Shown here piece by piece: positions 1 through 54,641 of a stretch of DNA of 64,000 bases. Source of the stretch: Chlorokybus atmophyticus (Eukaryota > Plantae > Mesostigma and Chlorokybus algae); the NCBI GenBank assembly GCA_009103225.1, contig RHPI01001132.1, positions 1 through 64,000 on the forward strand, read 5' to 3'. A program made the translations under genes and the position numbers. The first letter of the stretch is position 1. Every line of letters begins with the position of its first letter. Under the pieces are notes generated by a model that had not been told where the DNA came from, did no database searches, and saw nothing but the letters and a program-made list of their open reading frames with translations.

Positions 1-720
1 AAGTACTGTCTCAACCACAACAAGAGAGACTGGGACTTGGCGTTGCCATGGTTAGCAATGGGCTATCGCATGACGCGGCAGGCTGTGTTGAGCTCATACA
101 GCCCCTATTTTTTGTTGTATGGGAGAGAGCCCATACTGCCAACATCAATCCGGAGACAGGTTGAGCAGGAGCTTGACTTGGAGGATCCCAATGTGTGGGA
201 GAAGGAGATGGCAAAGCGTGCGGAGCTGTTCCGGTGTGTGATGCCGATTGCACTTGGCAACTTGCAAGTGGCACAACACCGCGACACGCTGCGCTATGCC
301 AGGGTGAGGAGTGGCTTCTACAAGCCAAGACTGCAGAAGTTTCAGCCCGGAGACTTTGTCTACCTGCAGAGAAAGACCAAGGACACGTTGGATACGAGTG
401 CGAGCCGCACCATCCTTCGTGTGAAGAAGCTTCTCAACAACGGTGTGTTGTTGTTAGAGGGAGCTGATGCCAGGACCACCAAGGAGCACATGAAGAGCTG
501 TGCTCCTTGCCATCTGCCAAACGTGGATGACAGTGTGGATCCGGCTCTGGCAATACCAGATGTGGGCCATCGTTGTGAGCGGTGTGGCCGAGCGGAAGGC
601 TGGGACACCATGCTGCTGTGCGACAGGTGTGTTGCCGGTTGGCACATGGAGTGCCTTCGTCCACCAGTTGAGGAGATCCCTGATGGGACATGGTATTGTC
701 CAGCGTGTACGAGGACTTGA
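1..720 (+). CDS. 3' end of the polyprotein of an upstream tandem copy of the same Ty3/gypsy element (integrase C-terminus + PHD finger), truncated by the window edge
   Basis: Matches 8142-8861 at an offset of 8141 bp with 7 substitutions seen by eye; open frame from base 1 to the TGA at 718-720; PHD Cys4-His-Cys3 at 574-708. Confidence 0.95.
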   Translation, partial: KYCLNHNKRDWDLALPWLAMGYRMTRQAVLSSYSPYFLLYGREPILPTSIRRQVEQELDLEDPNVWEKEMAKRAELFRCVMPIALGNLQVAQHRDTLRYARVRSGFYKPRLQKFQPGDFVYLQRKTKDTLDTSASRTILRVKKLLNNGVLLLEGADARTTKEHMKSCAPCHLPNVDDSVDPALAIPDVGHRCERCGRAEGWDTMLLCDRCVAGWHMECLRPPVEEIPDGTWYCPACTRT

Positions 721-770
721 GTAGCGTGTGAGTCAGCTGAAGGCGCACGAGGGCGTTGGCGCTCAGCTGC

Positions 771-779
771 AGGGGGTGG
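771..779 (+). promoter_or_regulatory. Polypurine tract (AGGGGGTGG) abutting the LTR; second copy at 8912-8920
   Basis: Purine-rich run directly 5' of the TG that starts the LTR in both element copies; short, with one pyrimidine. Confidence 0.6.
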
Positions 780-1728
780 TGACACGCATCTTTCATGCGT
801 GTGTCAACTTCATGTGATGAGAGATGGTGCATGAGGCAGCATGACATGGTCTCATGGTGTATAATAGCATGCGTACATGCATGGCAAGGAGGTTTACGAT
901 GAGTTCGAGTCACGATGCGGGAAGGCACGACAGCTGTCATGCGCGAGCATGTAGTGTCATGTGCATGATGCCCTCGGGGCTGGCGACATGGATGGACCTT
1001 GGGATTTTGGCTCTCATAGCCATTTTACAGGGTTTATGTGTTGGGTTTTCATTGGGAACTCATGTTTGGGTCCTCATGGACGTGAGGGAGGTGTGTTCGA
1101 GGCGTATCTACAGTCAGATACGGAGCTGACAGCATATTTGGGTCACTATGGTATCTCGCACAGCTGTTTCGGAGTTGTGACTTTGAGAAGCCGTAACTTA
1201 CAGTTGGAGTGGCGGTTTGGCCATGGGTTGGCGTCAAAAGATGCGTCTTGAAGTGTACTTGAAGAGGATGAGCTTGGATAAGCCTTTCCTAACTGTTTAC
1301 CGTTACTTATCAACGCCACCATGACTGTTACTATGCTGGTGCAGATTGACAGTTAGGGTAGTTGGAGAGTTGGTTGGGCTTGAGCTCAACGGTGGTATAT
1401 AAGGCTTTGCTAGCCTGTTTCCTAGTTTGGTTGGATGCAAGTTGGCCTACTGGAGTGCAAGCAACACCTTTGGGAAGAGGTTCTTGGCTGAGCGGATGCG
1501 TGTGCACATGCTTGCATGTATGGCGTGTGTGCACGTGTTCGTTGCTGTGCGTTGCTGTGCATGAAGGGGTGTGTGTCACTGTTGCGACTTTGATGCACCG
1601 TATGGGCTGCCTTAGCATGTACTTTGAGTGAGGATTGAGTTGGGACTGCTTTACACAAGTGAACGGCTGATTGCAAGTCAAGTTGTGGTCTACTTGCCTA
1701 CCTTTTGCAAGGGGACACGCATCTTTCA
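780..1728 (+). repeat. LTR (~949 bp, TG...CA), shared as 3' LTR of the upstream copy and 5' LTR of the full copy
   Basis: Near-identical to 8921-9870 and 9855-10804; starts TGACAC right after the PPT and ends CTTTCA, where identity with the downstream copies stops; internal TATATAA at 1396-1402. The 5' boundary could alternatively be 796. Confidence 0.85.
1396..1402 (+). promoter_or_regulatory. LTR TATA box (TATATAA); also at 9538-9544 and 10471-10477
   Basis: Canonical TATA about 33 nt upstream of the sequence complementary to the PBS. Confidence 0.65.
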
Positions 1729-1741
1729 CTTGCATCCAACC
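1729..1741 (+). promoter_or_regulatory. Putative self-priming primer-binding site CTTGCATCCAACC
   Basis: Directly follows the LTR end; exact reverse complement of 1429-1441 (GGTTGGATGCAAG); no TGG start, so not a tRNA 3'-CCA type PBS. Confidence 0.7.
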
Positions 1742-1787
1742 CATCAGCTGAGTTTGCTCGAGGTAGAAGCGAGTTGCAGGCGTGTTC

Positions 1788-4700
1788 ATGCCTTTAAGAT
1801 CTGGTGAGGACTGGCACGAGAGACCCACGAAGGCGGCTTTGAAGAGAAGAGCGCCGAGAGGGACGATCACTCCGGTGGTGGAGGGCGTCGCCGAAGAGGT
1901 GGAGTTGTCGAGTGACGAGGAGTCCGACATCGAGGACGAGGGTGGAAAGATGGCTGATTCAGCTTCAACCATGGATAGCACACCGAGATTCAGTGGGAGG
2001 CCCGGCACGGCGGACCTACGCGACTTCATCGACCGCTTCGACTCCGAGATGGTCAAGTGGGAGTATCGGGACAAGTCGGGGTGGGACGAGCACAAAGCCT
2101 TCAAGATGTTGCCTCTATACCTCAAGGATGAAGCCCTTGGCACGTGGAGAGAGTTCAAGGAGCAGCTGGAGGTGAGGGAGAGGGCGTTGCGGCTCGGCGC
2201 ACCGGCTGCGTTTGAAGCGGAGTGGAAGAAGGAGCAGCCCGTGACTGAGTTCAAGGCGCTCTTGAGGAAGACCTACCCACAATCAACACCCGCCAAGGTT
2301 CGTGAGCTGAGTTTCTTCAAGCGCAACGCCGGGGAGACGGCGAGGATGATGTATACGCGCATGCTCAAGCTCTTGACGGACACGGACTACAAGGTGATGA
2401 CGGATCAGACCGCGGCGGTTGTGTACCTTCAACAACTAGAGGCGGACTTGAGGCTGAAGGTGGAGACCATGTTGACCACTCAGTCCGAGTTTGGCACATA
2501 CACGCTTGCGGATGTCTTCAAGGTGGCCGAGACGGCAGAAATTCAGCATGAGTACCTCAAGAACATTGACCGACAGCGTCGGGGGTTGAAGTTGCTTGAG
2601 ATTTCGGAGGAGAAGAGCTCTTCCAAGCCCGCGGCAACATCGGCGGCAAGCAAGGCAGCTGGTGGGAAGCCAAAGGAGTTCAAGCATGCCAACAACGCGG
2701 TTGTGGAAGGTGTGTCGGGTGCCAAATGCTGGTCGTGTGGAGAGCAAGGCCATATTGCAAGGGATTGTGGGAAAGGCAAGAAGGTGGTGTGCTCTCATTG
2801 CAAGAAGGGTGGGCATGTTGATGCCAAGTGTTGGAGTAAGCATCCAGAGCTGCGTCCACAACAAGGAGCGGCAGTCGGAGCTCACTCGAGTGTGAGAGCG
2901 GAGCCATCAATGTCGGAGGTGACAAAGGCATTGGCGGCAATGCAATCGGAGTATGCATCGTTGAAGAGCATGCTCGAGCGAGGGAAATGGCCCGAGAGAG
3001 GAGCGGAGGATAAGCCAAGCAGCTCCGGAGGTTACCTCGCGTATAGTGCGCTCTCCGGAGGCACTAAGGTGGCAGCGGTTGCGACGACGAGAGCGTCGGC
3101 ACGCCGAAACGCTGCACCAGCTCCCCCGACTAGGATGGTTGAGGAGGAGGCCGCGCCCGTCCGCGAGGAGGGTGTGGATCATGATAGGATGCGGGCACCA
3201 GCTGCACGCATGCCTATGTCATTTAAGTTGCTGCCAACAACCCCGTTGGAGCAAGAGAGTTCGCGCTCGGAGGGTGCGAAAGTGCAGCCGACTGCTACGG
3301 CAACGGCGCGACATGATGTCGGCGTCGGTGGCGGTGGTGAGCACAAGAGAGTGGGGGAGCTGCTACAGATGTGTGTAAAGCTTCTCGAGGGTGCCAAGAT
3401 GCTTTCCCAACAGCCCGCAACTCAAGCCAATGAAGAAAACTTGGAGTTGACGGCGCCGTTGGAGAGCGTTGCGGCGGAGCTGGTCGGGCAGCCGCTTGTT
3501 TGCTTGAAGGACCTTGGAGTCAGCAAGGAACACGTGATGGAGCTGTTGCAAAGTGCTCTAGACACCACTAGGACTGCCTCGACAAAGTCTCATGACCATA
3601 TGAGCAAGTCTCATGAAGATATGGTGGCGCAAGCAGGCCGTATGGTTGCGCGCGCGGAGCTGGCGGCGCCCGAGGGGTCCGCGTCGGCGTCGAGTTCTCT
3701 CACTCAGCTTGAAGACAAGCTGGAGGAAGGTGTGGGGAGTGTAGGAGGGATGTTGGCAATGCTTCCCGCCACTCGGCCGGCCTTGAGAGAGAAGATATCG
3801 CCGAATGTGGCGATGGTGGACAACCGTGGGGGGCACATCAGCCTAGACGGCTTCGTGCCAGATGTTGTCTTGGTGGATACAGGTGCACAACCTGTCATTT
3901 TGGGTGCTAGAGCTGTCAAGGGGATGGGACTCAGCCCCAAGGAGTGGGAGCCATGCCCGGTCATGATCAATACCTCGGCGGGGACCGTAGAGGCCGTGTG
4001 CGGCATAACGGTGCAGCCGGTGGACATATGCTTGACTGCGGTGGGAGGTGCTACCACGTCCTTCAAGGTTCGATGCCTCATCACGGATGCAAAGGGGTAC
4101 GATGTGCTGCTCGGACAAGACTTCTTGTTCCCCGTCGGCGGCGGCGTTGACAATTGGATCGAACAAGGGTTCTTTCGGCCGCGTTGGCGTGTGGGTGGAG
4201 GGGAGAAGGCCTATTTTCCGTTGAGCATCACACAAGGGGGTCTTGAGAGGTCTCCAACCTCTGCATCTGCTGTGTGGGCGTGCTTGAGTCGCCGTTCAGT
4301 CAAGGGATGGCTTGGTGACAGCACCGACATGTACTATGACCATGTGGAGGAGGGGGAGAGTGTCCTCGCACACATGGAGGAGGGGAGACCTCCGGAGCTG
4401 GTCTATATGGCGCAAACTCAGTCACAAGAGCTGGAGTTGGCTTCACAACATCGTGCTCAGCGGCAACAAGAGGCTCAAGACAAGGTTAGCCAAGCATGGA
4501 TGAAGGATGTGATGGCATTGGAGCCGCCATTGCTGCCCGAGGGTGTGAGAGCTGTTCATCCGCCTATCAACTACAGCACCGTCGAGTGGAAGGTCCCCGA
4601 GGAGGGTGTTGTGATGGTGGAGCTGTTCGGTGGCATTGCAAGTGGGCTTGCGGCCGCGTTGAACGCCGGCATCAAGGTGCGGCGCTATATCTATGTGGAC

Positions 4701-7700
4701 CCTTCGCCAACGGCGCAACAAGGTGCACAACATCATGTGAGGATGTTGTTGAAGAAGTATCCAGATCTGCTACATGAGGATGCGGTGAAGGGCTTTCAAA
4801 GCACATGGCCGCAAGACATTTGCTTGATAGGGCCACATCAACTTGCAGCTATCGGCCATGTGCATTTGCTTGTAGCCGGGTGGGAATGCCAAGGGCATTC
4901 ACGGGCTGGTCATGGCAAAGGATTGATGGATGCGCGCTCGTCATTGTTTTGGGAGTTAGTGCGCATCATCAACAGGATTCAGCAAGGACAAGAGCAGCCC
5001 ATGGCGTACATCGTCGAGAATGTACCAGCTGAAGATGACAAGCGCAAGCGCGTGCGAGAAGACTATCAGCTGGTGAGACATGTGCTAGGCCATGAGCTGG
5101 TCATGGATGCGGCACGGCATGGTTCGCGCGCGCATCGGCTGCGTGTGAAGTGGACAAACCTCGCGCCGGTTGAGTTGCTTCGCACGGTGCAGCAAGAGTA
5201 CTCTAGACCGCAAGGTTTGACAGTCAACCAGGTGCTGGAGCATGGGCGCACAGCACAACAGGTCAGCAAGGCTGATCGGCCGCCTCAAGAGGTGGTGAAC
5301 CAGGTCGGGCACGACATGGCGGCGCTGCCGACATTGGTGACATACCCAGGCTCTTATGCATTCCGCAAGGGAGGGCCAGGGCTGGTGTGGGACTCACAGA
5401 ACAGCAGGTTGGAAGAGCCAACAGCTGGTGAGCGCGAGCGTGCGATGGGGTTCTTGTCCGGTGCGACAGCGGCGCCGGGACTAAGTGAACAACAGCGCCG
5501 TGTGCTGCTAGGACAAGCCATGGACCAGAACAGCATGGTGTGGCTGATGGTTGTCTGCTTGGCGGCACAAGAGTTGGTGGCAAGCATCATGCCGATGCGA
5601 CAGCAAGCGCGTCGGGAGCCTGCGCCTCTGTCGAGGGGGTGGGAGCAGGTTGTACATGATGAGGAGAGTAAGGGGGTGTCTTTTTCGCCTGTGACAGCTG
5701 CAAGTGGCAAGAAAGCGGCTGTAGATGGTGCCTTGAAGCAGGAGAAGGCCACCGACCAGACCATGGAGTGGTGTATAGGCGAGCATGTGACACCACATGA
5801 GCGTGAGTGGCTCGAGGCGTTGCTGGCGCGCAAGCGTGACTGCTTCGCCTACTCTACCAAGGAGTTGGGAGTTTGCAACTTCTACACAATGGACATTGAG
5901 TTGACCTCTCCAGAGCCCATCTTTCGTCGGCAGTATCGGCTGAGCAAGGTGGAGAAGGAGTTTGTGGCAGAAAAGTGTGCTGACTTGTTGGAGGCCGGAC
6001 TCATTGAGGAGTCAACCTCGGACTTCGCGGCGGCGACGGTGTTGCCGTTGAAGAAAGATGCACAAGGAAACTGGACCTCGAGAAGGATGTGTGGTGACTA
6101 TCGGCCTCTCAATGAGAAGACCAAGGCTGATCGGTACCCCATGCCTATCCCTGAGGCTATCTTTGATGACATCGGTGATGCAAAGGTGTTCTCCATCGTG
6201 GACTTGAGGCAGGGCTTCAACCAGATCGCCATCAAGCCCGAGGATCGTGGCAAGACAGCGTTTTGGGGAGTGGACCAGCTCTACCAATGGAAGGTCATGC
6301 CGTTCGGCTTGAAGAATGCGCCTGTGAAGTTTCAGCGTGTGATGGACCGTGTGCTTCGTGGTCTACCCTTCGCAAGGTGCTACATAGATGACATCTTGGT
6401 GTTTAGCCACACGATGGAGGAGCATCTCGTGCACTTGGAGCGCGTGTTCGAGCGCGTGCGCGAGAGCGGCATGAGGTGTCACCCGGAGAAGTGCTTGTTT
6501 GGAGCTGATCGCATCCCGTATCTCGGCCATGAGATAGTGCCGGATGGCGTCCGTGTGCAGCAAGCAAAGGTGGATGCCTTGGTGCAAGTGCCCGCACCGA
6601 CGGACATTAGCCGGCTTCGAGCGTTTCTCGGCTTGGCGAACTACTATCGGAGGTTCGTGGAGGGGTATAGCAAGATTGCAAAGCCCTTAAATGAGTTGTT
6701 GAAGAAGGACAAGGCCTGGTGCTGGTCGGAGGAGTGCCAACGTGCCTTTGAGCTTCTCAAGGAGAAGCTATGCACCGCGCCGGTGTTGAGACGGGCGGAC
6801 TACAACCGTCCCTTCATCCTACACACGGATTGGAGCCGTTTGGGCATTGGGGCCGTGTTGTGTCAAAAGGATGATGATGGGAAGGAGTATGTGGTCGCGT
6901 ATGGCAGCCGAAGCAACAATAACGCTGAGGCAAACTACAGCTCCTATGAGGGGGAGTGTTTGGCAGTAGTTTGGGCCATAGTTCACTTCAGACCGTTCCT
7001 CTATGGCCGTCCCTTCACACTCATCACCGACCACCAGCCCTTGAAGTGGTTGATGACCAATGACAAGCTCACGGGGAAGCATGCCAGGTGGGCGCTCATA
7101 CTGCAAGAGTATGAGTTTGAGATTGAGCACCGAGCTGGTGTTGACAACATGGACGCGGATGGGCTGAGTAGGAACCCAAACCCTTCATCGTTGGATGAGA
7201 GTGAGGCGAGGCATGACTATGGCATGCCCGTGGCTGGGTTTTTGGCCTACCGTGTGGCTTCTTTGCTGGTGTTGGCGGGTTCGGTGGAAGCATGCGCATC
7301 CATGCGCGCAAACGCAGCTGGAGAGAGCGACAACAATGGTGTAATGCCGCCTTTGGAGGCTGCACCAGCCCCAACGGTCAATGACATTGAAGGGGAGGAA
7401 GCCGAGGCTTCAAAGGACATTTGGAGGGATGAGCAAGTGCTTGCTCACCTCAAAACCGGGCTGTTCCAAGCTGGTTGCAGCACGGCGACGCGAGATCGCG
7501 TGTGGCAACGCGCGCAACGCTATCGATGGGAGGGAAACCACCTTGTGCGCTTGATGCCGGATGGAGGTGTGAGGATTGTGCCTCAACCACATGAGAGGAA
7601 GCCGCTTGTGGAGCTGCTTCATGAGAGGATGGGCCACTTTGGTGTCAAGAGGACACTTGGGCTCGTGCAATCAGCATATTGGTGGGCTGGCATGAAGTCT

Positions 7701-8861
7701 ACCGTGGCGGAAGTTGTTGCAAGCTGTGTGGAGTGCGACAGAGTGAAGGCAAGCTTCAATGCCAAGCACCCACAGCTGCACCCTCTACCTATTCAAGGAC
7801 TTTTCTATCGGTGGAGCCTAGACCTGGCCGGAGATCTACCAGTCAGCAAGAGAGGCAACCGCTACGTGCTCGTGATGATAGAGCACTTCTCCAAGTGGGT
7901 CGAGGTCGTGGCGCTGCCATCGAAGGAGAGCAAGCTTGTGGCTGAAGCTTTCCTTGATCAAGTCCTTAGCAGATTCGGTGCTTGTGCTGAGGTTCTCACT
8001 GACCAAGGCACCGAGTTTCGTGGCCAGTTCGATGACTTGTTGGCGCAAGCCTTTATCGACCATCGAAGGACTTCTCGTGACCATCCTCAAGCCGATGGGC
8101 TTGCTGAGCGAATGGTACAGGTGGTGAAGAAAGGGCTTCGCAAGTACTGTCTCAACCACAACAAGAGAGACTGGGACTTGGCGTTGCCATGGTTGGCAAT
8201 GGGCTATCGCATGACGCGGCAGGCTGCGTTGAGCTCATACAGCCCCTATTTTTTGTTGTATGGGAGAGAGCCCATATTGCCAACATCAATCCGGAGACAG
8301 GTTGAGCAGGAGCTTGACTTGGAGGATCCCAATGTGTGGGAGAAGGAGATGGCAAAGCGTGCGGAGCTGTTCCGGTGTGTGATGCCGATTGCACTTGGCA
8401 ACTTGCAAGTGGCACAACACCGCGACACGCTGCGCTATGCCAGGGTGAGGAGTGGCTTCTACAAGCCAAGACTGCAGAAGTTTCAGCCCGGAGACTTTGT
8501 CTACCTGCAGAGAAAGACCAAGGACACGTTGGATACGAGTGCGAGCCGCACCATCCTTCGTGTGAAGAAGCTTCTCAACAACGGTGTGTTGTTGTTAGAG
8601 GGAGCTGATGCCAGGACCACTAAGGAGCACATGAAGAGCTGCGCTCCTTGCCATCTGCCAAACGTGGATGACAGTGTGGATCCGGCTCTGGCAATACCAG
8701 ATGTGGGCCACCGTTGTGAGCGGTGTGGCCGAGCGGAAGGCTGGGACACCATGCTGCTGTGCGACGGGTGTGTTGCCGGTTGGCACATGGAGTGCCTTCG
8801 TCCACCAGTTGAGGAGATCCCTGATGGGACATGGTATTGTCCAGCGTGTACGAGGACTTGA
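1788..8861 (+). CDS. Gag-Pol polyprotein (~2357 aa): Gag-CCHCx2 / aspartic protease / C5-cytosine methyltransferase / RT / RNase H / integrase / PHD
   Basis: Uninterrupted ORF (first ATG 1788; the track opens it at GTG 1782). Zn knuckles CWSCGEQGHIARDC and CSHCKKGGHVDAKC (2727-2831); protease LVDTGA (~3876); RT CGDYRPLN and YIDDIL (6381); RNase H LHTDWS...DGLSR; integrase HERMGH..CVEC, SLDLAG, LTDQG, AERMV; C-terminal PHD (8715-8849). Confidence 0.95.
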   Translation: MPLRSGEDWHERPTKAALKRRAPRGTITPVVEGVAEEVELSSDEESDIEDEGGKMADSASTMDSTPRFSGRPGTADLRDFIDRFDSEMVKWEYRDKSGWDEHKAFKMLPLYLKDEALGTWREFKEQLEVRERALRLGAPAAFEAEWKKEQPVTEFKALLRKTYPQSTPAKVRELSFFKRNAGETARMMYTRMLKLLTDTDYKVMTDQTAAVVYLQQLEADLRLKVETMLTTQSEFGTYTLADVFKVAETAEIQHEYLKNIDRQRRGLKLLEISEEKSSSKPAATSAASKAAGGKPKEFKHANNAVVEGVSGAKCWSCGEQGHIARDCGKGKKVVCSHCKKGGHVDAKCWSKHPELRPQQGAAVGAHSSVRAEPSMSEVTKALAAMQSEYASLKSMLERGKWPERGAEDKPSSSGGYLAYSALSGGTKVAAVATTRASARRNAAPAPPTRMVEEEAAPVREEGVDHDRMRAPAARMPMSFKLLPTTPLEQESSRSEGAKVQPTATATARHDVGVGGGGEHKRVGELLQMCVKLLEGAKMLSQQPATQANEENLELTAPLESVAAELVGQPLVCLKDLGVSKEHVMELLQSALDTTRTASTKSHDHMSKSHEDMVAQAGRMVARAELAAPEGSASASSSLTQLEDKLEEGVGSVGGMLAMLPATRPALREKISPNVAMVDNRGGHISLDGFVPDVVLVDTGAQPVILGARAVKGMGLSPKEWEPCPVMINTSAGTVEAVCGITVQPVDICLTAVGGATTSFKVRCLITDAKGYDVLLGQDFLFPVGGGVDNWIEQGFFRPRWRVGGGEKAYFPLSITQGGLERSPTSASAVWACLSRRSVKGWLGDSTDMYYDHVEEGESVLAHMEEGRPPELVYMAQTQSQELELASQHRAQRQQEAQDKVSQAWMKDVMALEPPLLPEGVRAVHPPINYSTVEWKVPEEGVVMVELFGGIASGLAAALNAGIKVRRYIYVDPSPTAQQGAQHHVRMLLKKYPDLLHEDAVKGFQSTWPQDICLIGPHQLAAIGHVHLLVAGWECQGHSRAGHGKGLMDARSSLFWELVRIINRIQQGQEQPMAYIVENVPAEDDKRKRVREDYQLVRHVLGHELVMDAARHGSRAHRLRVKWTNLAPVELLRTVQQEYSRPQGLTVNQVLEHGRTAQQVSKADRPPQEVVNQVGHDMAALPTLVTYPGSYAFRKGGPGLVWDSQNSRLEEPTAGERERAMGFLSGATAAPGLSEQQRRVLLGQAMDQNSMVWLMVVCLAAQELVASIMPMRQQARREPAPLSRGWEQVVHDEESKGVSFSPVTAASGKKAAVDGALKQEKATDQTMEWCIGEHVTPHEREWLEALLARKRDCFAYSTKELGVCNFYTMDIELTSPEPIFRRQYRLSKVEKEFVAEKCADLLEAGLIEESTSDFAAATVLPLKKDAQGNWTSRRMCGDYRPLNEKTKADRYPMPIPEAIFDDIGDAKVFSIVDLRQGFNQIAIKPEDRGKTAFWGVDQLYQWKVMPFGLKNAPVKFQRVMDRVLRGLPFARCYIDDILVFSHTMEEHLVHLERVFERVRESGMRCHPEKCLFGADRIPYLGHEIVPDGVRVQQAKVDALVQVPAPTDISRLRAFLGLANYYRRFVEGYSKIAKPLNELLKKDKAWCWSEECQRAFELLKEKLCTAPVLRRADYNRPFILHTDWSRLGIGAVLCQKDDDGKEYVVAYGSRSNNNAEANYSSYEGECLAVVWAIVHFRPFLYGRPFTLITDHQPLKWLMTNDKLTGKHARWALILQEYEFEIEHRAGVDNMDADGLSRNPNPSSLDESEARHDYGMPVAGFLAYRVASLLVLAGSVEACASMRANAAGESDNNGVMPPLEAAPAPTVNDIEGEEAEASKDIWRDEQVLAHLKTGLFQAGCSTATRDRVWQRAQRYRWEGNHLVRLMPDGGVRIVPQPHERKPLVELLHERMGHFGVKRTLGLVQSAYWWAGMKSTVAEVVASCVECDRVKASFNAKHPQLHPLPIQGLFYRWSLDLAGDLPVSKRGNRYVLVMIEHFSKWVEVVALPSKESKLVAEAFLDQVLSRFGACAEVLTDQGTEFRGQFDDLLAQAFIDHRRTSRDHPQADGLAERMVQVVKKGLRKYCLNHNKRDWDLALPWLAMGYRMTRQAALSSYSPYFLLYGREPILPTSIRRQVEQELDLEDPNVWEKEMAKRAELFRCVMPIALGNLQVAQHRDTLRYARVRSGFYKPRLQKFQPGDFVYLQRKTKDTLDTSASRTILRVKKLLNNGVLLLEGADARTTKEHMKSCAPCHLPNVDDSVDPALAIPDVGHRCERCGRAEGWDTMLLCDGCVAGWHMECLRPPVEEIPDGTWYCPACTRT
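4605..5560 (+). other. C5 DNA cytosine methyltransferase domain within the polyprotein
   Basis: C5-MTase motifs in canonical order: I VELFGGIASG (FGG 4626), IV AGWECQGHSRAG (Cys 4887), V DARSSLFWELVRII, VI YIVENV (5016), VIII AHRLRVKWTNL (5130), IX ERERAMGF, X LLGQAMD (5505). Confidence 0.9.
8715..8849 (+). other. PHD finger at the integrase C-terminus
   Basis: C-x2-C...LLC-D-G-C...WH-x2-C-L-x-PP...IP-x-G-x-W-x-C-P-x-C; complete Cys4-His-Cys3 pattern. Confidence 0.93.
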
Positions 8862-8920
8862 GTAGCGTGTGAGTCAGCTGAAGGCGCACGAGGGCGTTGG
8901 CGCTCAGCTGCAGGGGGTGG

Positions 8921-10941
8921 TGACACGCATCTTTCATGCGTGTGTCAACTTCATGTGATGAGAGATGGTGCATGAGGCAGCATGACATGGTCTCATGGTG
9001 TATAATAGCATGCGTACATGCATGGCAAGGAGGTTTACGATGAGTTCGAGTCACGATGCGGGAAGGCACGACAGCTGTCATGCGCGAGCATGTAGTGTCA
9101 TGTGCATGATGCCCTCGGGGCTGGCGACATGGATGGACCTTGGGATTTTGGCTCTCATAGCCATTTTACAGGGTTTATGTGTTGGGTTTTCATTGGGAAC
9201 TCATGTTTGGGTCCTCATGGACGTGAGGGAGGTGTGTTCGAGGCGTATCTACAGTCAGATACGGAGCTGACAGCATATTTGGGTCACTATGGTATCTCGC
9301 ACAGCTGTTTTCGGAGTTGTGACTTTGAGAAGCCGTAACTTACAGTTGGAGTGGCGGTTTGGCCATGGGTTGGCGTAAAAAGATGCGTCTTGAAGTGTAC
9401 TTGAAGAGGATGAGCTTGGATAAGCCTTTCCTAACTGTTTACCGTTACTTATCAACGCCACCATGACTGTTACTATGCTGGTGCAGATTGACAGTTAGGG
9501 TAGTTGGAGAGTTGGTTGGGCTTGAGCTCAACGGTGGTATATAAGGCTTTGCTAGCCTGTTTCCTAGTTTGGTTGGATGCAAGTTGGCCTACTGGAGTGC
9601 AAGCAACACCTTTGGGAAGAGGTTCTTGGCTGAGCGGATGCGTGTGCACATGCTTGCATGTATGGCGTGTGTGCACGTGTTCGTTGCTGTGCGTTGCTGT
9701 GCATGAAGGGGTGTGTGTCACTGTTGCGACTTTGATGCACCGTATGGGCTGCCTTAGCATGTACTTTGAGTGAGGATTGAGTTGGGACTGCTCTACACAA
9801 GTGAACGGCTGATTGCAAGTCAAGTTGTGGTCTACTTGCCTACCTTTTGCAAGGTGACACGCATCTTTCATGCGTGTGTCAACTTCATGTGATGAGAGAT
9901 GGTGCATGAGGCAGCATGACATGGTCTCATGGTGTATAATAGCATGCGTACATGCATGGCAAGGAGGTTTACGATGAGTTCGAGTCACGATGCGGGAAGG
10001 CACGACAGCTGTCATGCGCGAGCATGTAGTGTCATGTGCATGATGCCCTCGGGGCTGGCGACATGGATGGACCTTGGGATTTTGGCTCTCATAGCCATTT
10101 TACAGGGTTTATGTGCTGGGTTTTCATTGGGAACTCATGTTTGGGTCCTCATGGACGTGAGGGAGGTGTGTTCGAGGCGTATCTACAGTCAGATACGGAG
10201 CTGACAGCATATTTGGGTCACTATTGTATCTCGCACAGCTGTTTCGGAGTTGTGACTTTGAGAAGCCATAACTTACAGTTGGAGTGGCGGTTTGGCCATG
10301 GGTTGGCGTCAAAAGATGCGTCTTGAAGTGTACTTGAAGAGGATGAGCTGGGATAAGCCTTTCCTAACTGTTTACCGTTACTTATCAACGCCACCATGAC
10401 TGTTACTATGCTGGTGCAGATTGACAGTTAGGGTAGTTGGAGAGTTGGTTGGGCTTGAGCTCAACGGTGGTATATAAGGCTTTGCTAGCTTGTTTCCTAG
10501 TTTGGGTTGGATGCAAGTTGGCCTACTGGAGTGCAAGCAACACCTTTGGGAAGAGGTTCTTGGCTGAGCGGATGCGTGTGCACATGCTTGCATGTATGGC
10601 GTGTGTGCACGTGTTCATTGCTGTGCGTTGCTGTGCATGAAGGGGTGTGTGTCACTGTTGCGACTTTGATGCACCGTATGGGCTGCCTTAGCATGTACTT
10701 TGAGTGAGGATTGAGTTGGGACTGCTCTACACAAGTGAACGGCTGATTGCAAGTCGAGTTGTGGTCTACTTGCCTACCTTTTGCAAGGGGACACGCATCT
10801 TTCATGCGTGTGTCAACTTCATGTGATGAGAGATGGTGCATGAGGCAGCATGACATGGTCTCATGGTGTATAATAGCATGCGTACATGCATGGCAAGGAG
10901 GTTTACGATGAGTTCGAGTCACGATGCGGGAAGGCACGACA
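8921..10941 (+). repeat. Tandem LTR array: two full units of 934 bp (8921-9854, 9855-10788) plus a truncated third (10789-10941)
   Basis: GACACGCATCTTTCA recurs at 8922, 9856 and 10790; homology stops abruptly after GGCACGACA at ~10941. Confidence 0.92.
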
Positions 10942-11892
10942 TGATCAAAGTCTTATACAAGTTAATGCATTAACATGTTGCGCCGTGATAATAGTTACAT
11001 TTTACTACTAATACAATGTGTGGCATGCCAATGCTTTCCTTTAACAAGGGGGACTTTATTGTGACAATCATTTTGCATGTTACAAGCGTGCGCTTTTTGG
11101 TATGGTCTTGTAATTCAAAATCTTGTTCTACAAGACGCGTCAACATTTGCAGTTAGCATACATAACAATACAATCTCGAGCAATGCTACTGCCAGCAGCC
11201 TGCTGGTAGCATTGCTACCGGTAAAGGGAATTCGCTTCTACTGAGGTTCAGTCCAACTTGCGCTGCCCAAGCTTCCTTTTGGTATGCAATCCCTGATCTT
11301 GTCGCGCTTAGCAATGACACTGCGTGAACAAAGTGCATATCTCAATAAGCCGACGTCAGCCGGAGTCAGCAATGAAAGATATCCTCTGCACCGTTTCGAA
11401 TTTCCTCCTGCCTCCAGTGAATCCTGCCACGTCGGCGCGCCCCGTGCTGGAAATCGCGATCGCGATGTCGGACATCGGCTGCAGGGGATTCTGTAACGCC
11501 CCTTCCCGACAACGGCACGGATATCGCAGACTATATATTGTTGCTTTGAACCATGGCAGTAACAAAGCGTTGTGGTGTGAACAACTCGGGGCGCTTCAGG
11601 TTGACAGAGGTGAGCTTTGGGCCTGTGCATGCTTTGGTAGGTGTGCGTGTCGTTGGCATTGTGCGTGTCTCAATGTGAACAGGTTTGTGTGTGGTGCATT
11701 GGTTGATGCGGTGTCATAGTATTCTGCCTGTGTGCACTACTTGAGTAGCAAGTAGCGATAGAACGGTGCACGCCCGTTCTGTCTTGTGCCCTTAGTGGAG
11801 GCTGCCAGTTTGTGCTGCTCATGTGAGGTATTTGTCGCAGACTCTTTGCAAGCAATTGGTGTAAGCAGCTTTCAACTCCAGCAAACGCAGCA

Positions 11893-12324
11893 ATGGAGGG
11901 TGTGCGCAAGGTGAGCTTCGCTGATGCATGCATACTGCCCGCAAGCATGCTGTCATTGAAGTTCGGTGCCATTGCAAAGACAACTGCACGCTGACTGATC
12001 AACTGATCTCAGGAGCAAGAGAAGCTGGCCGCACATGAGCACAAGCAGGACGCTAAGGGCAGCTTGAAGGGTGCCGTAGCTGCGGCCAAGGACACAATCA
12101 TGGGCAAGCATGCCGACCAGGACCGCGCTGACCACGAGTATCTGGAGTCCAAGGGCTACGACATGGGTGGCAGCCCCGCCCCGGCTTCCCACGAGGGCTC
12201 TCACAACGCCCCCGGCAAGCCTGGCGTCATGGACAAGGTCAAGGAGTCTATGAGCCACGCCAAGGAAGCTGTCAAGGCCAAGACTAGCAAGAATGCACAC
12301 GAGGCTCAGGAGTACAGAAATTAA
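11893..12324 (+). CDS. Small hydrophilic LEA/dehydrin-like protein (109 aa; exons 11893-11910, 12013-12324)
   Basis: GT-AG intron 11911-12012 keeps the frame; protein rich in K/E/H/G/A with no Cys or Trp; KPGVMDKVKESM resembles the dehydrin K-segment. Confidence 0.65.
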
Positions 12325-14998
12325 GTGGATCTTGCGAAATGGAGCCGTAGCATACAAACACCAAGTAGGTAGACAGCTAGTGTAGACATTCTGTACAGAC
12401 AGTCTGCGGTGACAGCGCAGCAATTGTAACGGTATGTGTGTATTCTCTTCCACTTCCACTCTGCATTTGCGTGGAACACAAGAAAGTCTGCGGTGTTAGC
12501 AATGGCATATCCTGTGTGCATGTGTGTGAAAACTTGCCCAATCCCGCGTTGATCTTTAAGCATGCAACTAAATATCTGTTTTTTGATTCATGCAAAGTAT
12601 TGTCCGTTGCTGTGCAAGGACAGTACTTGTCTATAAGTCTGCAAAAGTACTAAAACATACTGTACATGCACCTTACTGCACAGGAAAGTTAATCAACGAC
12701 TGTTCAACTGTTGCACAGTGTAGGTGGGTAAAACAATACCAACTTATTGTGCATACACCTTACTGCAAAGACTATTTGGCCAATAACTGTTCGCTGCTAG
12801 CACAGTGGGATTGTATAAACGCCGATGTGTAGCCATTGAGTTGGCAGTATGCTTCGTCCTACACTGCTGACTACTAGCGAATGGCTTGATAATTCTGTGG
12901 TGACTATCAGGTCTTGATGGTGCATTAACTTGCTTGCGGTGTATGTGTCACACTCATGCACCGCATCTGCTACGCTCAGTGCTTGTAAATACAAGTTACA
13001 AGCTTGTTCCTAACTGAAGGCAATTTAAGCACCCATTAATTCTGCACTGCATGCACTAGTCTCTCAAATGTCCTCACAACAAAGCTGTTGTTACAGAACC
13101 ACGCGCGTGAACACCAATTTCACCTCATGGTACCAGTAGGCACAAACAATGCCCCCCGGAGTAAAACACATCCATGTCTCTTTGTTTGGCGGGNNCTGGC
13201 CTTGGGGGGGACATTAAGCTACTGAAGCTAGCAAGCATAACAGCATACCACAACCTTCAACGACACCTTCGAAAATACCATTGTGTTCCCATGTCATACA
13301 TTGATTCATTGAGGCTTAGTGGAGGTGAACGCAAGTGATCGCCATGCTGCTGACAGCTCGCAGAGTCCTGTCTGCTTGCATGACGTATGCTCATTCTAGC
13401 ATATCATGTCTTGTACGCTGGCATATGGTGATGCCACTGGCCAACTGTCTCCCCTCGCCTGCAGTCTTAGGAAAGACGACGCTTGAGGGTGCTTCCTATG
13501 AGCACTGGTATTGCTACCCTATGTCATGCTTTGGAGACAGAGAAAATGAGGTCTGCATGTGTATACGTCTTATATGTACTCAGCAGGTGGACACCCTACG
13601 TCATAGTAAACACTTGTCTGCTGCAGGTGGTGGCTGCTCGCAACTGTACCGCAACAGAGGGAGGGAAGACCACACTTGTTACGCAGACCTGTAGTTATGC
13701 ATGGGCATGTCATTGCAGTAGCACAATGGTGGATGACTGCATTGTCGACACAGAGAGTCACTGCGACAACATACTACGGATGCCTACGGATGCCTCCTCA
13801 CTCAACTACTGCTCAAGGGACACTTGCCGGCCTACAGATCACCGCCTTTGGTAGCAGCCAGCTCCACTCCAGTAAAACGCCCTGGCTGGCAAAAGCCTGA
13901 TGCTTACCCAAGACAACCAATGCCACTATCACCGGCACCGCCACTACTCCGCTGCCCCCAGCCACACCGGCAATGCCAGCCATACCGCCGCCACTAGCGC
14001 AGAAGCATAAACTGTTGTGGGCCAGAAGGAAAGCCGCGGGAAGATACGTGGCCGCGTGCGACAAACGTAACCAAAACTCAACGTTAGCTAAGAGGTACTC
14101 TTCCAGCGAAGATTCTCTCAACTGCTAACGTGCAGAAGGTCTGTACGAAGAATATGTCCAGCAAGTCGGTTACCTACCGTAGCTTTGCTGAGTACACTGC
14201 GCAGCAAGCAGCTTAGCATTGCACGCAGCACCTCGGTGCGGCGGCGGCGGTGGGGTCGATGCAGTCGTAGCTCAGGCAGGCGCCCTCGTCCCCCTTGTTT
14301 CTCGTGCTGCCCACACCATAGGTACAACAGCCTTCTACGCGCTGCTTGTATGGGGGTCTGCTATGTTGCCGGTTGTGCGGAAAGGCAGAGCTAAGTGGCA
14401 GCAGCTCGATGCATTATGAGAAGGAATGCTTGCGTCACCCACAACTGCTCTATTCCTTGCTCGTGTGTTGAGCGCAAGCATATGCGTCGTCGGTTGTTCG
14501 TCGCCAAAGTTTGTTTGTTACGCTTTACTCCAGCTAACCGGTCGGCATGTCCTGTGATACCTTTGCCTTGTGCTGCACGTACCAGCTGTCACCAGCATGC
14601 TGCTATGCATGAAGCTCTGCAGGAGGCTGTCGTAAAGGCAATGATGATCAGCTTGCACGCTGCTGGACATTGCCGTCGTCATGAGTTCCACGTGATTAAT
14701 GCATGATGCTCGACACGTGCCGCAACAGGGTGATAAGCTGGGTTGTTAACGCCTGTGCTGTGATTAATACACGTACGGGCAGCTGTGACATGCCTGCACG
14801 AATAAATGTTGTCTGACTGACTGTGCACTTTTTGAGCCACCAGACGACATTTCATTTTCAGCTCACTTCCAGTTCTTACTAAGCTTGAAGTTCGCACGCT
14901 TCTCCTTAAAGCCGCGGTTGTTGTTCTTGCAGCATACGACAGCTACAGACAAGGAGAAAGCAAAGGAGTGAATGTGGAGGGCGACTGAGTCCGGCGGA

Positions 14999-17565
14999 AT
15001 GAACGGCGGTGATGTCGGAGGCAGCGGGTTCGGCGGCCTCCTGGCGCATGGCGTCTCGGTCAAGAGCAGGCGCCAGTACTTGGCGGCCTGCAAATGGCTG
15101 TGCGTCCTTCAATTGGTATGCTAAGCTGCTGTCGAAATCGTGCGAATGCTCCCAATGCTTTTATAATGCGCCAGTTGTGCTACCTGTGTCAGGTCCATGC
15201 TTTACAACAACATGCAAACACATGAGAAGCCACATGGTATTTTGGTACCAGGAGTGTAAAATCGTGCACAGCAGTCTTGGTTGCATCGTTTATCATAGCA
15301 AGGGCTTTCGCACGCATGCATTACATACCACGCATGTAAGCAACGAGCATTTTAGACTGCTTTCATTGCGTGCAACTGCAATCACAGCCCTTCTTCCCCA
15401 AGTAGCTTGTTGCACTGGCACAGAGGCATTTCGAAATACCGCGTGCGGACATGTCAGTCTTTGTGTCTCAGTGATGCATTGTGCTCATTGCTGCCATGGG
15501 CAGGCCTGTGGGTTTGGTGTTGCGGCAGCAGCGCTGTCCTACCTGTACTCTTTCACCGCGATCACTGGCGCCTTTGTTGGTGGCCTCCTGGTTGTAGTCG
15601 GCATCTTCGGTCTTGCTGGAAGCGCAAGCTCTGATCGGCGCCTGTTGACTTTGGTAACTAAACCGAACCAACATGACAGTATCCAATGTGAAATAGCTGC
15701 GCGGTTTGTGCTGACTGCAGTATTGGCCTGTTTTGTGCAGTACTTGTTGGGCGCTCTGCTCGCTATGATGCTGAGCTTCCAGTTCATGGCGCAAGTTGAA
15801 CGACAGGTATGGTTGTATCAGTTCATCTCACAAACCACAGGTCTGTCAGATTCGGTAAAGTGGCGTATGTGTGAGCGTCATGCATGATTGTCATTGCAGT
15901 GACACAGTGCAGGTGGCAACGAGTCATACAGCGGTTGCATATTGTATGTTTTCAAGATCCAGATGCCTCCTGATTGTACGCATGTTGTGGTGTGTTCTCC
16001 CGGCAGCAGAAATGCCACATCTTGTGCGGCATTGGTTGACAACAATGATAAGTCTAACAGAATCAAGAACGTGATTGGTCAATTGCGTATGCGCGAAAAT
16101 TAGCCTTCATGCACTGCTAGACATGTTGTGCGCCCCTGGGTGTGTGGTGGGCACTGTTTGTACAAGCAGGGGTGCTTATGACCATGGTGTACCAAGATTA
16201 CATGCGCATGTTTGCTCAGTCGTACACATGTTCTTGTCGGTTGCAGTACACCAAACGGTTAGCATAGAGCATTAAGCGCACTATATGTAGCACATCAGAG
16301 GTACCAAGTGATGTTGATTTCTATTTTGAAAACACGCATGCACAAGCGCGCAGTCCGTGAGTGGTGTCTCTGCAGTCATCACTCACTGCCGTTGCGCAGG
16401 CTGTTACGGACTGCACACTCGCAGAGCTCAATGGCCGACTGAGGATTATGGAGGCAGATCTCACCAGACAGCAGTACTCTCAACAATTCGTTGATATTGT
16501 AACGAGGATGGATGAAGTTGAGGTGAGAATTCCTCACGTTAGTGGTGCTATCACCGCCTCAGCAGAACAATTTATCCTGAGTTTCTGTGTATATAGGACG
16601 TGCTCGACTTCATTGCAGCAGACAAGAAAGGAGGCCAGCACAACATTCACCATCAGCAAATTGCATCCGATAGGTGGGCTGTCAGACATTGTCGTTATTG
16701 ACATGCTTGGGGGTTACATGTACCCAAAGACTTGTTTTCATGCGACCAGGCATGCACGCACATGGTGATCGGTGTTGTTTTATGGAAATTTTGGCAATTA
16801 ACAGGGCGTACATTTCTGAGAGGCTGAAGGTCCTGAAGGAGCACGCAGAAGAGATCATGAAAGTGACTGAGGACGCTCTTGAGCTTCATGCAAACCAAGC
16901 CAACACCGAGACCGATCCGAAGCGCGCCTCGCCGTACAAGATGACTGATGAAGAACACGAGATGATGGTGGATCGCCTCAACTCCATGGGCAACGCCATC
17001 CACCTCATCGACATGCATCTCAATGACAACTCCCCAATGGACCGCGAGGAGTACCTGCAGATCATGGAGGAGCTCGCTGAGATGTACAACCCCCAGACCA
17101 AGAAGCCGCACAAGCCGCAGATGCCGGAGCGCCTGCAGGCAGTTCAACGGGAGATTCCCCGTGCTCACGCGGCGTTCGACACGCTTGACCGCGTCAAAGA
17201 CGATCATCAGGAAGACAGGTACTGAGCATTCGGTTATGAGCTAAGCCAGCTGTCTCACATGGCGACTTGCGCGCATATGTGCAATGGCTTACAATTTACA
17301 TTGCAGGTCTTACGTTCTGGAGAGCTTCCGGGCAAGGCTTGCTGACAAGCAGCAGAAGTATTGGCAGGACGAGTTTGATGACGAGTTTGCGCACCACGAG
17401 CTTGATGACCTCGCCATGGCCAACGACATGCCAGAGCACTGTGTGCAGGAGAGCCACGCGTGGAAAGCCATGCTGGGTCTTGGCAGCGCAGTCATTATAC
17501 TTCAGCTGCTCTCTTCTTACTGCGTGCTGTCGCTTCTGTTCTTGCTACCGGTTAAGTCGGAGTAG
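14999..17565 (+). CDS. Tetraspanin-like 4-TM membrane protein, ~401 aa, 7 exons
   Basis: Exons 14999-15115, 15504-15653, 15741-15806, 16400-16522, 16597-16673, 16805-17218, 17307-17565 join in frame through GT-AG introns; three N-terminal hydrophobic helices (GLLVVVGIFGLAGS; RRLLTLYLLGALL), a long loop, then a fourth helix near the C-terminus. Confidence 0.7.
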
Positions 17566-18918
17566 AGTAGTGCATTGATGAGGGTGCAGCAGTAGTAGTT
17601 GGGTTCTGTTGGGATACACTTGCGTTGCAATTAAAGTTTTGGCATTGTGTTCGTGTATATATAGTCAAGGTTGCTCGAGTTCGTACGTCGCGTATTGTCA
17701 CTGTCTCCGCTACGTGTCATATCTTGTGCAAGCGCATCTTGTTAGCATAACTAGACTATACTTAAGTTGGGGTTACACGGTCAGCTGAGCCCTCAAGTGT
17801 TGTGCGCATTCTGCCCTCTGAGTCATAGGAATTGGATCTGATAGCTTTCACAGACTGGTCATGATGAACGCCTGCTACTGGACACCACTACTACCACATG
17901 TGGCCCTCAGCTCGGTGGAAGGGCATGGCAGTGGAGCCAGCCAAGTGCTGAAAGTACAATGACCACGCGCGTTTGGAACCAGTTCGTCCCTCTATCAGTC
18001 GATACCTCTGGCACTCTTGGTTCCTCCTTCACGAGCTCCACGAGCTAATCACCAACTATGCGCGCCACGTAGTTCAGCACAGGGTATTCTTGCTAGCCGT
18101 AAGTCGGGTTTTTGCCCTTGCTTGTACATAGGCATAGGCGTTGCAGCAGGCTTAGGACTTGGCGCTATTCAAAGTAATTACGGCTGTGTGCACGATTCTG
18201 GGCTAGCCAGCCCCATGGCCTGGCCGTACGACTACCATTTTGTACATTGCAGCGCTCTTGATGAGCCCTACATGCTGGCGTGCATAATGTGGCTATGCGA
18301 GATGCGACGCTTGTATGGTGGCTATCAGTTGGTATTGCGGGTGTGCGTGGCTTGTGCTCGGTTGTTATGTGTAGCAGTATGGTTTCTACCACTCTGACAG
18401 TACCAACGTTTACAGCACTAATGTTGCAACTAGGTTAATCACAGTTTGAAGTAACTGATGAAGGACGACCATGGTGAGTGTACGCTCCACATTGCCACTT
18501 TGCGCAGGGCGGAGCCACGGCGCCTTGAGGGCTTCATTCGCATTTGCCGTCAGCGTGTGGCATGCGCCTTGCAGCGGGCGCAGGCGATAGCGATCTTGGA
18601 GCGAGGAGTTGCAGCAGTGGCGGCGTTGCCGGGATGGGGTCCTGCGGCGCAAGGCCCACCAACTACTGAGGCAAACGCCGCGCTTACTTAGCATGGCGGG
18701 GTGTGCGTGTTGGTTTGTGTGTTGATTTTGTATTGTTGAGCGGATAGGTATGGTAGCAGCACTGAGAGCAGACGCTTGTATACGAATGACAATAGCGGTT
18801 ATCAACATCAAATGACATTAAAGCCTCCATGCACTAGAGACAAGCTGGAGTACACATGAGCCCGATAGCAATGTATGACAATGATTGTGATACTCTCACT
18901 TGATGAGACTTGGTAATT

Positions 18919-21891: not shown

Positions 21892-21916
21892 TTGATTCAT
21901 ACTTGTCTTGTGCAAC

Positions 21917-54603: not shown

Positions 54604-54641
54604 ATGAGAAGTTGCAAGTCGCGCGACTTGCAACTTCTCAT
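54604..54641. repeat. Perfect 38-bp palindrome
   Basis: ATGAGAAGTTGCAAGTCGC|GCGACTTGCAACTTCTCAT, no loop and no mismatch. Confidence 0.95.

Follow-up and report, generated by a model that had tools for sequence, protein, structure and literature searches.

A Ty3/gypsy retrotransposon of Chlorokybus atmophyticus whose protease and reverse transcriptase flank a DNMT3-type cytosine methyltransferase domain: a divergent member of the Gypsy-DNMT3 family

Methylation of DNA at cytosine (5-methylcytosine, 5mC) is usually viewed as a weapon of the host against transposons, and a retrotransposon that bears a cytosine methyltransferase (MTase) of its own reverses this view. The closest described system is KnitGypsy-Dnmt3 of the alga Klebsormidium nitens, a Gypsy element with long terminal repeats (LTRs) and a Dnmt3 domain within the Pol open reading frame (ORF), the repeat structure of which was called unusual in the figure legend (de Mendoza et al., 2018, PMC5890265). 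The K. nitens copies were reported to be silent and methylated in the CHG and CHH contexts, while the key residues of the domain were conserved and Ka/Ks was below 0.2 (PMC5890265). These elements are cited as ‘streptophytes (Gypsy-DNMT3)’ in a preprint (bioRxiv 10.64898/2026.05.21.726589), and later papers in the field refer to de Mendoza et al. (2018) alone for LTR-DNMT3 elements of streptophytes. Here we analyze a stretch of 64,000 nucleotides from Chlorokybus atmophyticus (assembly GCA_009103225.1, contig RHPI01001132.1, positions 1 to 64,000 of the forward strand; “the window” in the following text), the beginning of which is occupied by an autonomous Ty3/gypsy LTR retrotransposon with a complete DNMT3-type domain between the protease (PR) and the reverse transcriptase (RT).

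The gag-pol ORF of the element, delineated by the ORF list, Pfam search and translation, spans positions 1782..8861 of the plus strand, on which all the domains listed below are encoded. It is continuous over 7.08 kb, contains neither stops nor frameshifts, has its first ATG at 1788 and encodes a polyprotein of 2359 amino acids (aa), in accordance with the stop-free reading frame reported in a preliminary description of this DNA made from the sequence alone. Pfam analysis revealed the domain order gag(CCHC)-PR-MTase-RT-RNaseH-INT-PHD along the polyprotein, where INT is the integrase. The gag part contains a zf-CCHC zinc knuckle (aa 315-329, 2724..2768), followed by a second C-C-H-C pattern; the retropepsin-type aspartyl protease (aa 696-782, 3867..4127) and the reverse transcriptase RVT_1 (aa 1431-1585, 6072..6536) possess the D-T-G and Y-I-D-D motifs, respectively, in the translation, and RNase H (RH; RT_RNaseH / RT_RNaseH_2, aa 1648-1777) is located at 6723..7112. 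The integrase is represented by Integrase_H2C2 (aa 1936-1990) and the DDE core rve (aa 2009-2102) at 7587..8087, its zinc-binding and DDE signatures being legible in the translation, and it ends with a C-terminal PHD finger (PF00628, aa 2312-2356, 8715..8849), which had been noticed in the preliminary description as well and was recognized here both by Pfam and by matches in PDB. The order PR-RT-RH-INT together with the LTRs is that of Ty3/gypsy elements, and the Dnmt3-type domain is placed in frame inside the Pol ORF, without introns. No further Pfam domains were found in the gag-PR, PR-MTase, MTase-RT and RH-INT linkers.

The MTase domain, as delimited by its relatives, covers aa 940-1262 (4599..5567), almost exactly the span of 4605-5560 assigned to it initially. 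A match to the PF00145 profile, on which the assignment could be checked, was obtained for aa 1012-1088 with 36.1 bits against the cut-off of 22, and it spans only profile positions 49-118 of 324; the NCBIfam model TIGR00675 (dcm) scored 41 bits, under its cut-off of 100.65. Because the Pfam match extended over 70 of the 324 profile positions and the dcm score was below the cut-off, the domain was subjected to other tests. A phmmer search with aa ~901-1333 against all PDB chains returned the catalytic domains of DNMT3A as the best matches (2e-8), with the region from motif I to motif VIII aligned. The family profile, constructed from an alignment of the MTase domain with 38 relatives and used for both the PDB search and AlphaFold2 modelling, matched DNMT3A with 3e-24 and DNMT3C/3B with ~1e-22 to 1e-21, and gave weaker matches to plant DRM (2.5e-13 to 1e-9), M.HhaI (3e-9) and DNMT2 (1e-4); DNMT1 produced no match at E<=0.01 in this search of PDB. 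In the profile alignment three blocks (motif I; motifs IV-VIII; motifs IX-X) are colinear with DNMT3A, i.e., they follow the linear order and not the permuted order of DRM. The AlphaFold2 model of the domain (mean predicted local distance difference test score, pLDDT, 95.3; predicted template-modelling score, pTM, 0.93) displays a predicted class I MTase fold with the small and the large domains. Its comparison with PDB by Foldseek gave 210 matches at E<=1e-3, the top 50 of which were all catalytic domains of DNMT3A/B/C, with the best E of 3e-18, a target-normalised template-modelling score (TM) of up to 0.83 and a root-mean-square deviation (rmsd) of ~3.4 Å. As judged from the ranked profile and fold matches, the MTase domain is of the DNMT3 type, and the gypsy element proposed from the letters of the sequence, in which a C5-MTase lies in frame between PR and RT, was recovered concordantly by Pfam, the solved structures, the confident model and the fold search. 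The companion domains PWWP and ADD were absent from the PR-MTase and MTase-RT linkers in the Pfam analysis; such companions are not universal among DNMT3 proteins, since protist and algal DNMT3s devoid of them have been described (PMC12344493).

A viral origin of the MTase fold was considered as well and is disfavoured, as the matches in BFVD were generic C5-MTases of phages and giant viruses with a worse fit than that of DNMT3 (for the full-length matches, TM <=0.67 and rmsd >=6.7 Å).

Motif I of the domain (Phe949-Gly-Gly951) aligns to motif I of DNMT3A. Conservation of the motifs was estimated across 157 relatives with a near-complete domain, which are ~40% identical to the MTase of the element. 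Gly951 is conserved in 99% of them, and the acidic residue of motif II, Asp973, is represented by Asp in 80% and by Glu in 20%. The catalytic Cys1036 and the adjacent Gln1037 are retained in 99% and 91%, Glu1079 and Asn1080 of the Glu-Asn-Val motif in 100% and 96%, and the two arginines of Arg-x-Arg, Arg1119 and Arg1121, in 99% and 98% of the sequences, while in motif IX Glu1217-Arg-Glu is conserved at 96-99%, and Gly1223 and Gly1244 at 100% and 99%. Since the catalytic residues are near-invariant, catalysis is under strong purifying selection across the family. The motifs enumerated in the preliminary description (motif I, the catalytic Cys, Glu-Asn-Val, Arg-x-Arg, IX and X) are thus present, except that motif IV reads Glu-Cys-Gln and not Pro-Cys-Gln (aa 1035-1037, nt 4884-4892): the residue preceding the catalytic Cys is Glu, whereas DNMT3A has Pro in this position. 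In the corresponding column of the 157 relatives Glu accounts for 59% and Pro for 34%. Because both states are interspersed in both clades of domain architecture considered below, the Glu-Cys pair, as far as the alignment can tell, is a recurrent and tolerated state and not a sign of decay.

Constraint along the whole polyprotein was expressed as the share of 11 relatives of the same architecture that are identical to the residue of the element; column conservation was preferred to dN/dS, as the relatives are ~50% identical and substitutions are saturated. This share amounted to 0.44 in the MTase, compared with 0.55 in RT, 0.59 in RNase H, 0.52 in the integrase, 0.29 in the protease and 0.17 in gag, and fell to ~0.10 in the PR-MTase linker and in the stretch just after the MTase. 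Given the high value in the MTase against ~0.10 in the flanking linkers, the MTase is, by this measure, a discrete and constrained module kept almost as well as RT and the integrase. These data also bear on the supposition that the MTase is a non-catalytic module, namely a DNA- or chromatin-binding domain, a scaffold or a pseudo-enzyme which would help to bring the pre-integration complex to the nucleus or to tether it. Such a role would agree with the Glu found in place of Pro before the catalytic Cys, both here and in the majority of the relatives, with the absence of methylation by the K. nitens enzyme in yeast (PMC5890265), as well as with the short Pfam match and the low dcm score. Pseudo-enzymes, however, normally lose their catalytic residues, while in this family, at ~40% identity, the Cys, Glu-Asn, Arg-x-Arg and the glycines of motif I are kept at 91-100% and the motif II position varies only between Asp and Glu; moreover, the alternation of Glu and Pro within both clades is not accompanied by the loss of other motifs, and the predicted fold is a complete and confident DNMT3-like domain. 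Considering these facts, we find a non-catalytic function quite unlikely.

The search with phmmer among 1.84 billion cluster representatives yielded 1793 proteins at E<=1e-3, of which 728 reached <=1e-10 and 268 reached <=1e-30. The highest MTase identity in any database protein was ~54%, and an exact look-up of the polyprotein returned no record; K. nitens has 33 annotated DNMT proteins, yet none of them exceeds ~54% identity to the MTase of the element, which makes the K. nitens genome a very unlikely source of this DNA. Because no database protein lies above this value, the element is, on sequence grounds, a new and divergent representative of the Gypsy-DNMT3 family, belonging to its PR-MT-RT clade (MT, the MTase). 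The minority order, GAG-PR-MT-RT-RH-INT(-PHD), is shared by this element, P0007, P0008 and the proteins of K. nitens and Closterium, while the majority order, RT-RH-MT-INT-PHD, is displayed by P0009-P0033, P0052 and others, many of them metagenomic, exemplified by the ‘pol’ protein KAF8056149.1 of Scenedesmus sp. PABB004. The hosts known by name are the streptophyte algae Klebsormidium and Closterium spp. for the PR-MT-RT order, which would point to a streptophyte alga as the likeliest host of the element too, and the chlorophyte Scenedesmus sp. PABB004 is the sole one for RT-RH-MT-INT-PHD. The K. nitens protein GAQ92009.1 (P0028) has the PR-MT-RT-RH-INT order and 32-57% identity per domain to the element, its match to aa 1011-2268 being aligned at 45%; in the RT-RH distance tree its nearest neighbour is the element described here, on the same PR-MT-RT side of the split. 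In the trees of both MT and RT-RH (distance-based neighbour-joining, without bootstrap or support values) the two orders formed one clean bipartition, of 13/58 and 16/61 sequences, respectively. As the same bipartition is reproduced in both trees, the MTase and RT diverged together, which is compatible with a single early relocation of the MTase as well as with two early captures from one source.

A trivial explanation of the locus would be that a Gypsy element was inserted by chance into a host DNMT3 gene, that the assembly is chimeric, or that a host gene was misread as a part of the ORF. The tandem repeat layout described below could in principle reflect assembly problems, but several hosts and metagenomes have supplied dozens of independent sequences of the same in-frame architecture, the trees of MT and RT agree with each other, and the ORF is continuous over 7.08 kb, with its linkers and domains aligning full-length with the relatives. 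This recurrence effectively excludes a chimera or a chance fusion, to which we assign a negligible probability.

The relatives nearest in the MTase domain, L002 and L003, which originate from two independent samples and are 50-52% identical to it, have GAG-PR-MT and RT-RH-INT-PHD as separate ORFs in the same frame (469-4461 and 4471-7605 in L002; 1055-5410 and 5423-8542 in L003) with exactly one in-frame stop between them, which is not found in this element's copy. Such an arrangement points to programmed read-through, in which the MTase would belong to the more abundant product and be made in Gag-like amounts. The protein P0211, which bears the annotation ‘DNA cytosine methyltransferase [Candidatus Obscuribacterales bacterium]’ on a 2.4-kb contig of a metagenome-assembled genome, is 52% identical to the MTase of the element and is probably a fragment of a eukaryotic transposon mis-binned in a bacterial genome.

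The position of the MTase on the gag side of the stop in the closest relatives is also relevant to the nature of the substrate. The enzyme might act in the particle on RNA, on RNA:DNA hybrid or on single-stranded cDNA (e.g., producing m5C on the genomic RNA) and not on double-stranded DNA, in parallel to DNMT2, which has a DNA-MTase fold and acts on tRNA. RNA, hybrid and nascent cDNA are the substrates available in the particle, the enzyme of the closest relatives would be made in Gag-like amounts, and the Glu-Cys loop of motif IV could reflect a different substrate; RNA methylation was raised by de Mendoza et al. (PMC5890265) for those retrotransposon DNMTs that failed on DNA in yeast. On the other hand, the similarity of the domain to DNMT3A/B/C (E 3e-24) is far above that to DNMT2 (1e-4), and some of the related SymbioDIRS-Dnmt3 enzymes of Symbiodinium methylate CG in DNA de novo in yeast (PMC5890265). 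A substrate other than double-stranded DNA therefore seems to us improbable.

The LTRs were delimited by self-BLAST and alignment. The 5′ LTR (780..1728, plus strand, ~949 nt, TG...CA) doubles as the 3′ LTR of an upstream head-to-tail copy; its only TATATAA lies at 1396, and a ~15-nt string is repeated at its two termini (782-795 and 1714-1728). The upstream copy, cut by the edge of the window, is represented at 1..777 (plus strand) by the 3′ end of pol, comprising the C-terminal region of the integrase, the PHD finger, the stop and a short untranslated tail. Together with the LTR, it is 99.4% identical to the element over the 1-1728 / 8142-9870 match of self-BLAST, and by tblastn it corresponds to aa 2121-2359 at 99.2%. 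Downstream of the ORF, a polypurine-rich tract (8910..8920, plus strand), the putative function of which is suggested by its position, directly precedes the 3′ LTR, unit a (8921..9870), which is followed on the same strand by a second tandem unit b (9853..10804) and by the first 155 nt of a truncated third unit (10787..10941), after which unrelated, AT-richer sequence begins. Units a and b, with a period of 934 nt, overlap by exactly the common terminal repeat (~15 nt, given as ~18 nt for this overlap); the tandem units may have arisen by template switching or by recombination at this terminal repeat. The 5′ LTR differs from 8921-9870 by 3 mismatches and 1 gap, and unit b has 8-9 mismatches to the other two units. 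With 3, 8 and 9 substitutions between LTR copies of ~950 nt (99.0-99.6% identity) and an open ORF, the element copy and the array are young. Both the young age and the tandem LTR arrays of the preliminary description are thereby borne out, while the term “intact” used there is correct as regards the coding region and the LTRs on either side of it but not for the truncated third LTR unit, and target-site duplications are uncheckable in a tandem array.

Arrays of tandem LTRs seem to be characteristic of the family, being observed in the element, in the relative L001 (tandem repeat of 99.9% identity with a period of 8262) and in the relative L006, where an LTR pair is accompanied by partial LTR copies on both sides (8590-9940, 17146-19184). 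It was also observed that the GC skew at 1-12000 is strongly positive (0.15-0.23) on the coding strand of the element and the LTRs and close to 0 in most of the remaining window. Just downstream of the array a 67-nt direct repeat is found in two copies of 70% identity (12654-12720 and 12741-12807).

The region around the 5′ LTR boundary is consistent with self-priming of reverse transcription. In Ty3/gypsy elements of the Tf1/sushi type, which have a single gag-pol ORF, a primer-binding site (PBS) complementary to the 5′ end of their own RNA replaces the tRNA. In the element, the putative self-primer arm, i.e., the predicted RNA 5′ end lying 33 nt after the TATA box (1429..1442, plus strand), is perfectly complementary over 14 nt to the segment in the PBS position (1728..1741), which starts at the last base of the LTR, and none of 2000 shuffles reached an inverted repeat of this length. 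The same layout (TATA, ~31 nt, a 15-nt arm and its complement upstream of the ORF) is present in L001 (~46% aa identity), in the spacer between the tandem ORFs. A tRNA-type PBS is not evident, and neither tRNA genes nor Rfam matches were found in the window. A layout for self-priming, which had been suggested for this DNA, is therefore supported by the complement and by its recurrence in L001, the start of the RNA being a predicted one. The likeness to the Tf1/sushi-type elements thus consists in the single gag-pol ORF and the self-complementary segment, 14 nt long here, in the PBS position; it is a likeness of layout, and the Tf1/sushi-type elements are not known to carry an MTase.

The PHD finger at the end of the integrase is canonical, with CHD4 as the best PDB match (3.8e-15) and further matches to the PHD fingers of ATXR5, BAZ2B, KDM5A/B, WSTF, AIRE, PHF21A and UHRF1, several of which read the unmodified tail of histone H3 or unmodified H3K4. 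The finger therefore resembles the readers of the H3 tail, and a role in directing integration to a given chromatin state is plausible. This resemblance would also suit the view that the MTase serves self-limitation, i.e., that by methylation it silences the element's own new copies or their neighbours, lowering transposition and damage to the host so that tame lineages outlast others. Self-limitation is among the options proposed by de Mendoza et al. (PMC5890265), and the silent, methylated state of the K. nitens copies reported there is in line with it. It requires, however, selection above the level of the single copy, as a copy free of the MTase would out-replicate the others; the family, although very large and old, keeps its catalytic residues almost unchanged; and the ratio of observed to expected CpG in the element (0.62-0.80; ORF 0.79, LTR 0.62-0.64) compared with 0.74-0.86 in the host flanks reveals no element-specific CpG depletion. 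Hence, we regard self-limitation as unlikely. As to the substitutions between the copies, the seven differences between 1-777 and 8142-8918 are all transitions, three of them at CpG sites, and transitions likewise prevail over transversions among the LTR copies, the numbers in both cases being too small for a conclusion.

The reading we prefer combines the Gypsy-DNMT3 element as described above with methylation of its own new DNA. According to it, the protease of the element would cut the polyprotein at the poorly conserved linkers, releasing an enzyme of ~320 aa, dependent on S-adenosylmethionine, in or beside the particle. Reverse transcription would be self-primed by pairing of the RNA 5′ end with the segment that directly follows the 5′ LTR, and the DNMT3-like enzyme would methylate cytosines de novo on the new cDNA or on the fresh insertion, so that a new copy would arrive with a 5mC pattern similar to that of the host, while the PHD-integrase would select the chromatin context of the insertion. 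Methylation in the particle or on the cDNA, which the preliminary description suggested as well, was already hypothesized by de Mendoza et al. (2018, PMC5890265), who proposed passing as ‘self’, protection from deaminases, local shaping of chromatin and self-restraint as the possible pay-offs. Several points weigh against this combined reading. In the only published test of a Gypsy-DNMT3 enzyme, that of K. nitens gave no de novo methylation in yeast, a result its authors considered inconclusive (PMC5890265), and motif IV of the present enzyme departs from that of characterised enzymes, e.g., DNMT3A, in having Glu in place of Pro. The methylating activity on the element's own new DNA is a predicted one, as are the protease cleavage sites, the packaging into the particle and the transcription start, and the DNMT3 placement is based on ranked profile and fold matches and not on a tree with reference classes. 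The lack of element-specific CpG depletion, mentioned above, belongs here too, and the copy may equally be silenced, by analogy with the K. nitens copies (PMC5890265). With these points taken into account, we estimate the description of the element and self-methylation, taken jointly, to be moderately probable.

A bolder version of this reading may be formulated, in which Gypsy-DNMT3 would be no peculiarity of Klebsormidium but an old pan-green-algal lineage with self-priming and a PHD-integrase, the DNMT3-type MTase being a core component of pol that was relocated once and, in one subclade, shares with gag the part of the reading frame before an in-frame stop and would be made in Gag-like amounts, with the recurrent Glu-Cys loop adapted to nascent single-stranded or hybrid cDNA in the particle. 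If this were true, new insertions would arrive pre-methylated in the ‘self’ context of the host. We offer it as a speculation with a rather small chance of being correct as a whole.

As to the genomic surroundings, exons of host genes, recognized by their domain content, are located downstream of the element: a gene encoding a U-box followed by WD40 repeats (21908-23657), a prolyl-oligopeptidase beta-propeller exon (34582-35241) and, on the minus strand, an exon of ETF-ubiquinone oxidoreductase (ETF-QO; 60371-61138). The element thus sits in ordinary gene-bearing nuclear DNA. The ETF-QO exon is plant-like: in a search limited by a length filter, its best match was 68% identical and was followed by plants, Trebouxia and bacteria at ~57-63%, with plants and Trebouxia at ~60-63%. 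A block of low GC content (37-44% vs ~51% elsewhere) is visible at ~48000-56000, with no tRNA or Rfam matches.

With respect to novelty, the basic concept is unchanged since its publication in 2018. The preliminary description overestimated the novelty of the element, as it credited the earlier work with the general idea, while de Mendoza et al. (2018, PMC5890265) had reported a Dnmt3 domain in the Gypsy Pol ORF of K. nitens itself, and the domains of GAQ92009.1 follow the same order. The main text of that paper mentions neither the PHD-integrase (‘PHD’ has 0 occurrences there) nor the layout for self-priming nor the Glu-Cys pair of motif IV. In the searchable literature no description of the RT-RH-MT-INT-PHD architecture was found, and the same holds for the size of the family, its two orders, its occurrence in a chlorophyte, the PHD-integrase, the conserved layout for self-priming, the alternation of Glu and Pro in motif IV and the stop that follows the MTase in frame in one subclade. 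Compared with the single literature example from K. nitens, the family is far larger and more diverse, comprising hundreds of divergent lineages in two orders, with hosts among streptophyte algae and a chlorophyte. This copy is an unusually clean specimen of it: its 7-kb ORF is open, its LTRs are nearly identical, and its DNMT3-like domain is modelled with confidence. These family-level observations could be developed into a comparative study of the reasons for which a de novo methylase is retained by a mobile element.

Among the known systems, KnitGypsy-Dnmt3 is likewise an LTR Gypsy element with an un-rearranged Dnmt3-type domain in the Pol ORF, conserved catalytic residues and unusual repeats, from which the C. 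atmophyticus element is separated by an aa identity of 32-57% per domain. The elements of the RT-RH-MT-INT-PHD order (Scenedesmus KAF8056149.1 and metagenomic ones) share with it the homologous MTase (38-46% identity), RT, integrase and PHD finger, but their MTase is located between RNase H and the integrase, whereas here it is located between PR and RT. Outside Gypsy, SymbioDIRS-Dnmt3 of Symbiodinium also has a Dnmt3-class domain in a retrotransposon Pol polyprotein, with two domain orders; it is, however, a DIRS element with a tyrosine recombinase and not a DDE integrase, and its acquisition of the domain was independent according to the authors (PMC5890265). Mammalian DNMT3A, DNMT3B and DNMT3C (PDB 6w89, 2qrv, 6u8p) provide the best sequence, profile and fold matches and resemble the domain in the linear order of motifs and the short target-recognition region, but the identity is ~21%, and the domain of the element is ~60 aa longer, lacks adjacent PWWP and ADD and has Glu before the Cys. 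Finally, EpiLTRs (bioRxiv 10.64898/2026.05.21.726589) and Copia-MBD of arthropods (PMC6673714) are, like the element described here, LTR elements with captured writers or readers of DNA methylation and a chromatin reader; in the EpiLTR combination of DAM, DNMT and chromodomain, the DNMT is sister to DNMT4, not to DNMT3, and is accompanied by an adenine MTase and a chromodomain, while Copia-MBD carries a reader and not a writer.

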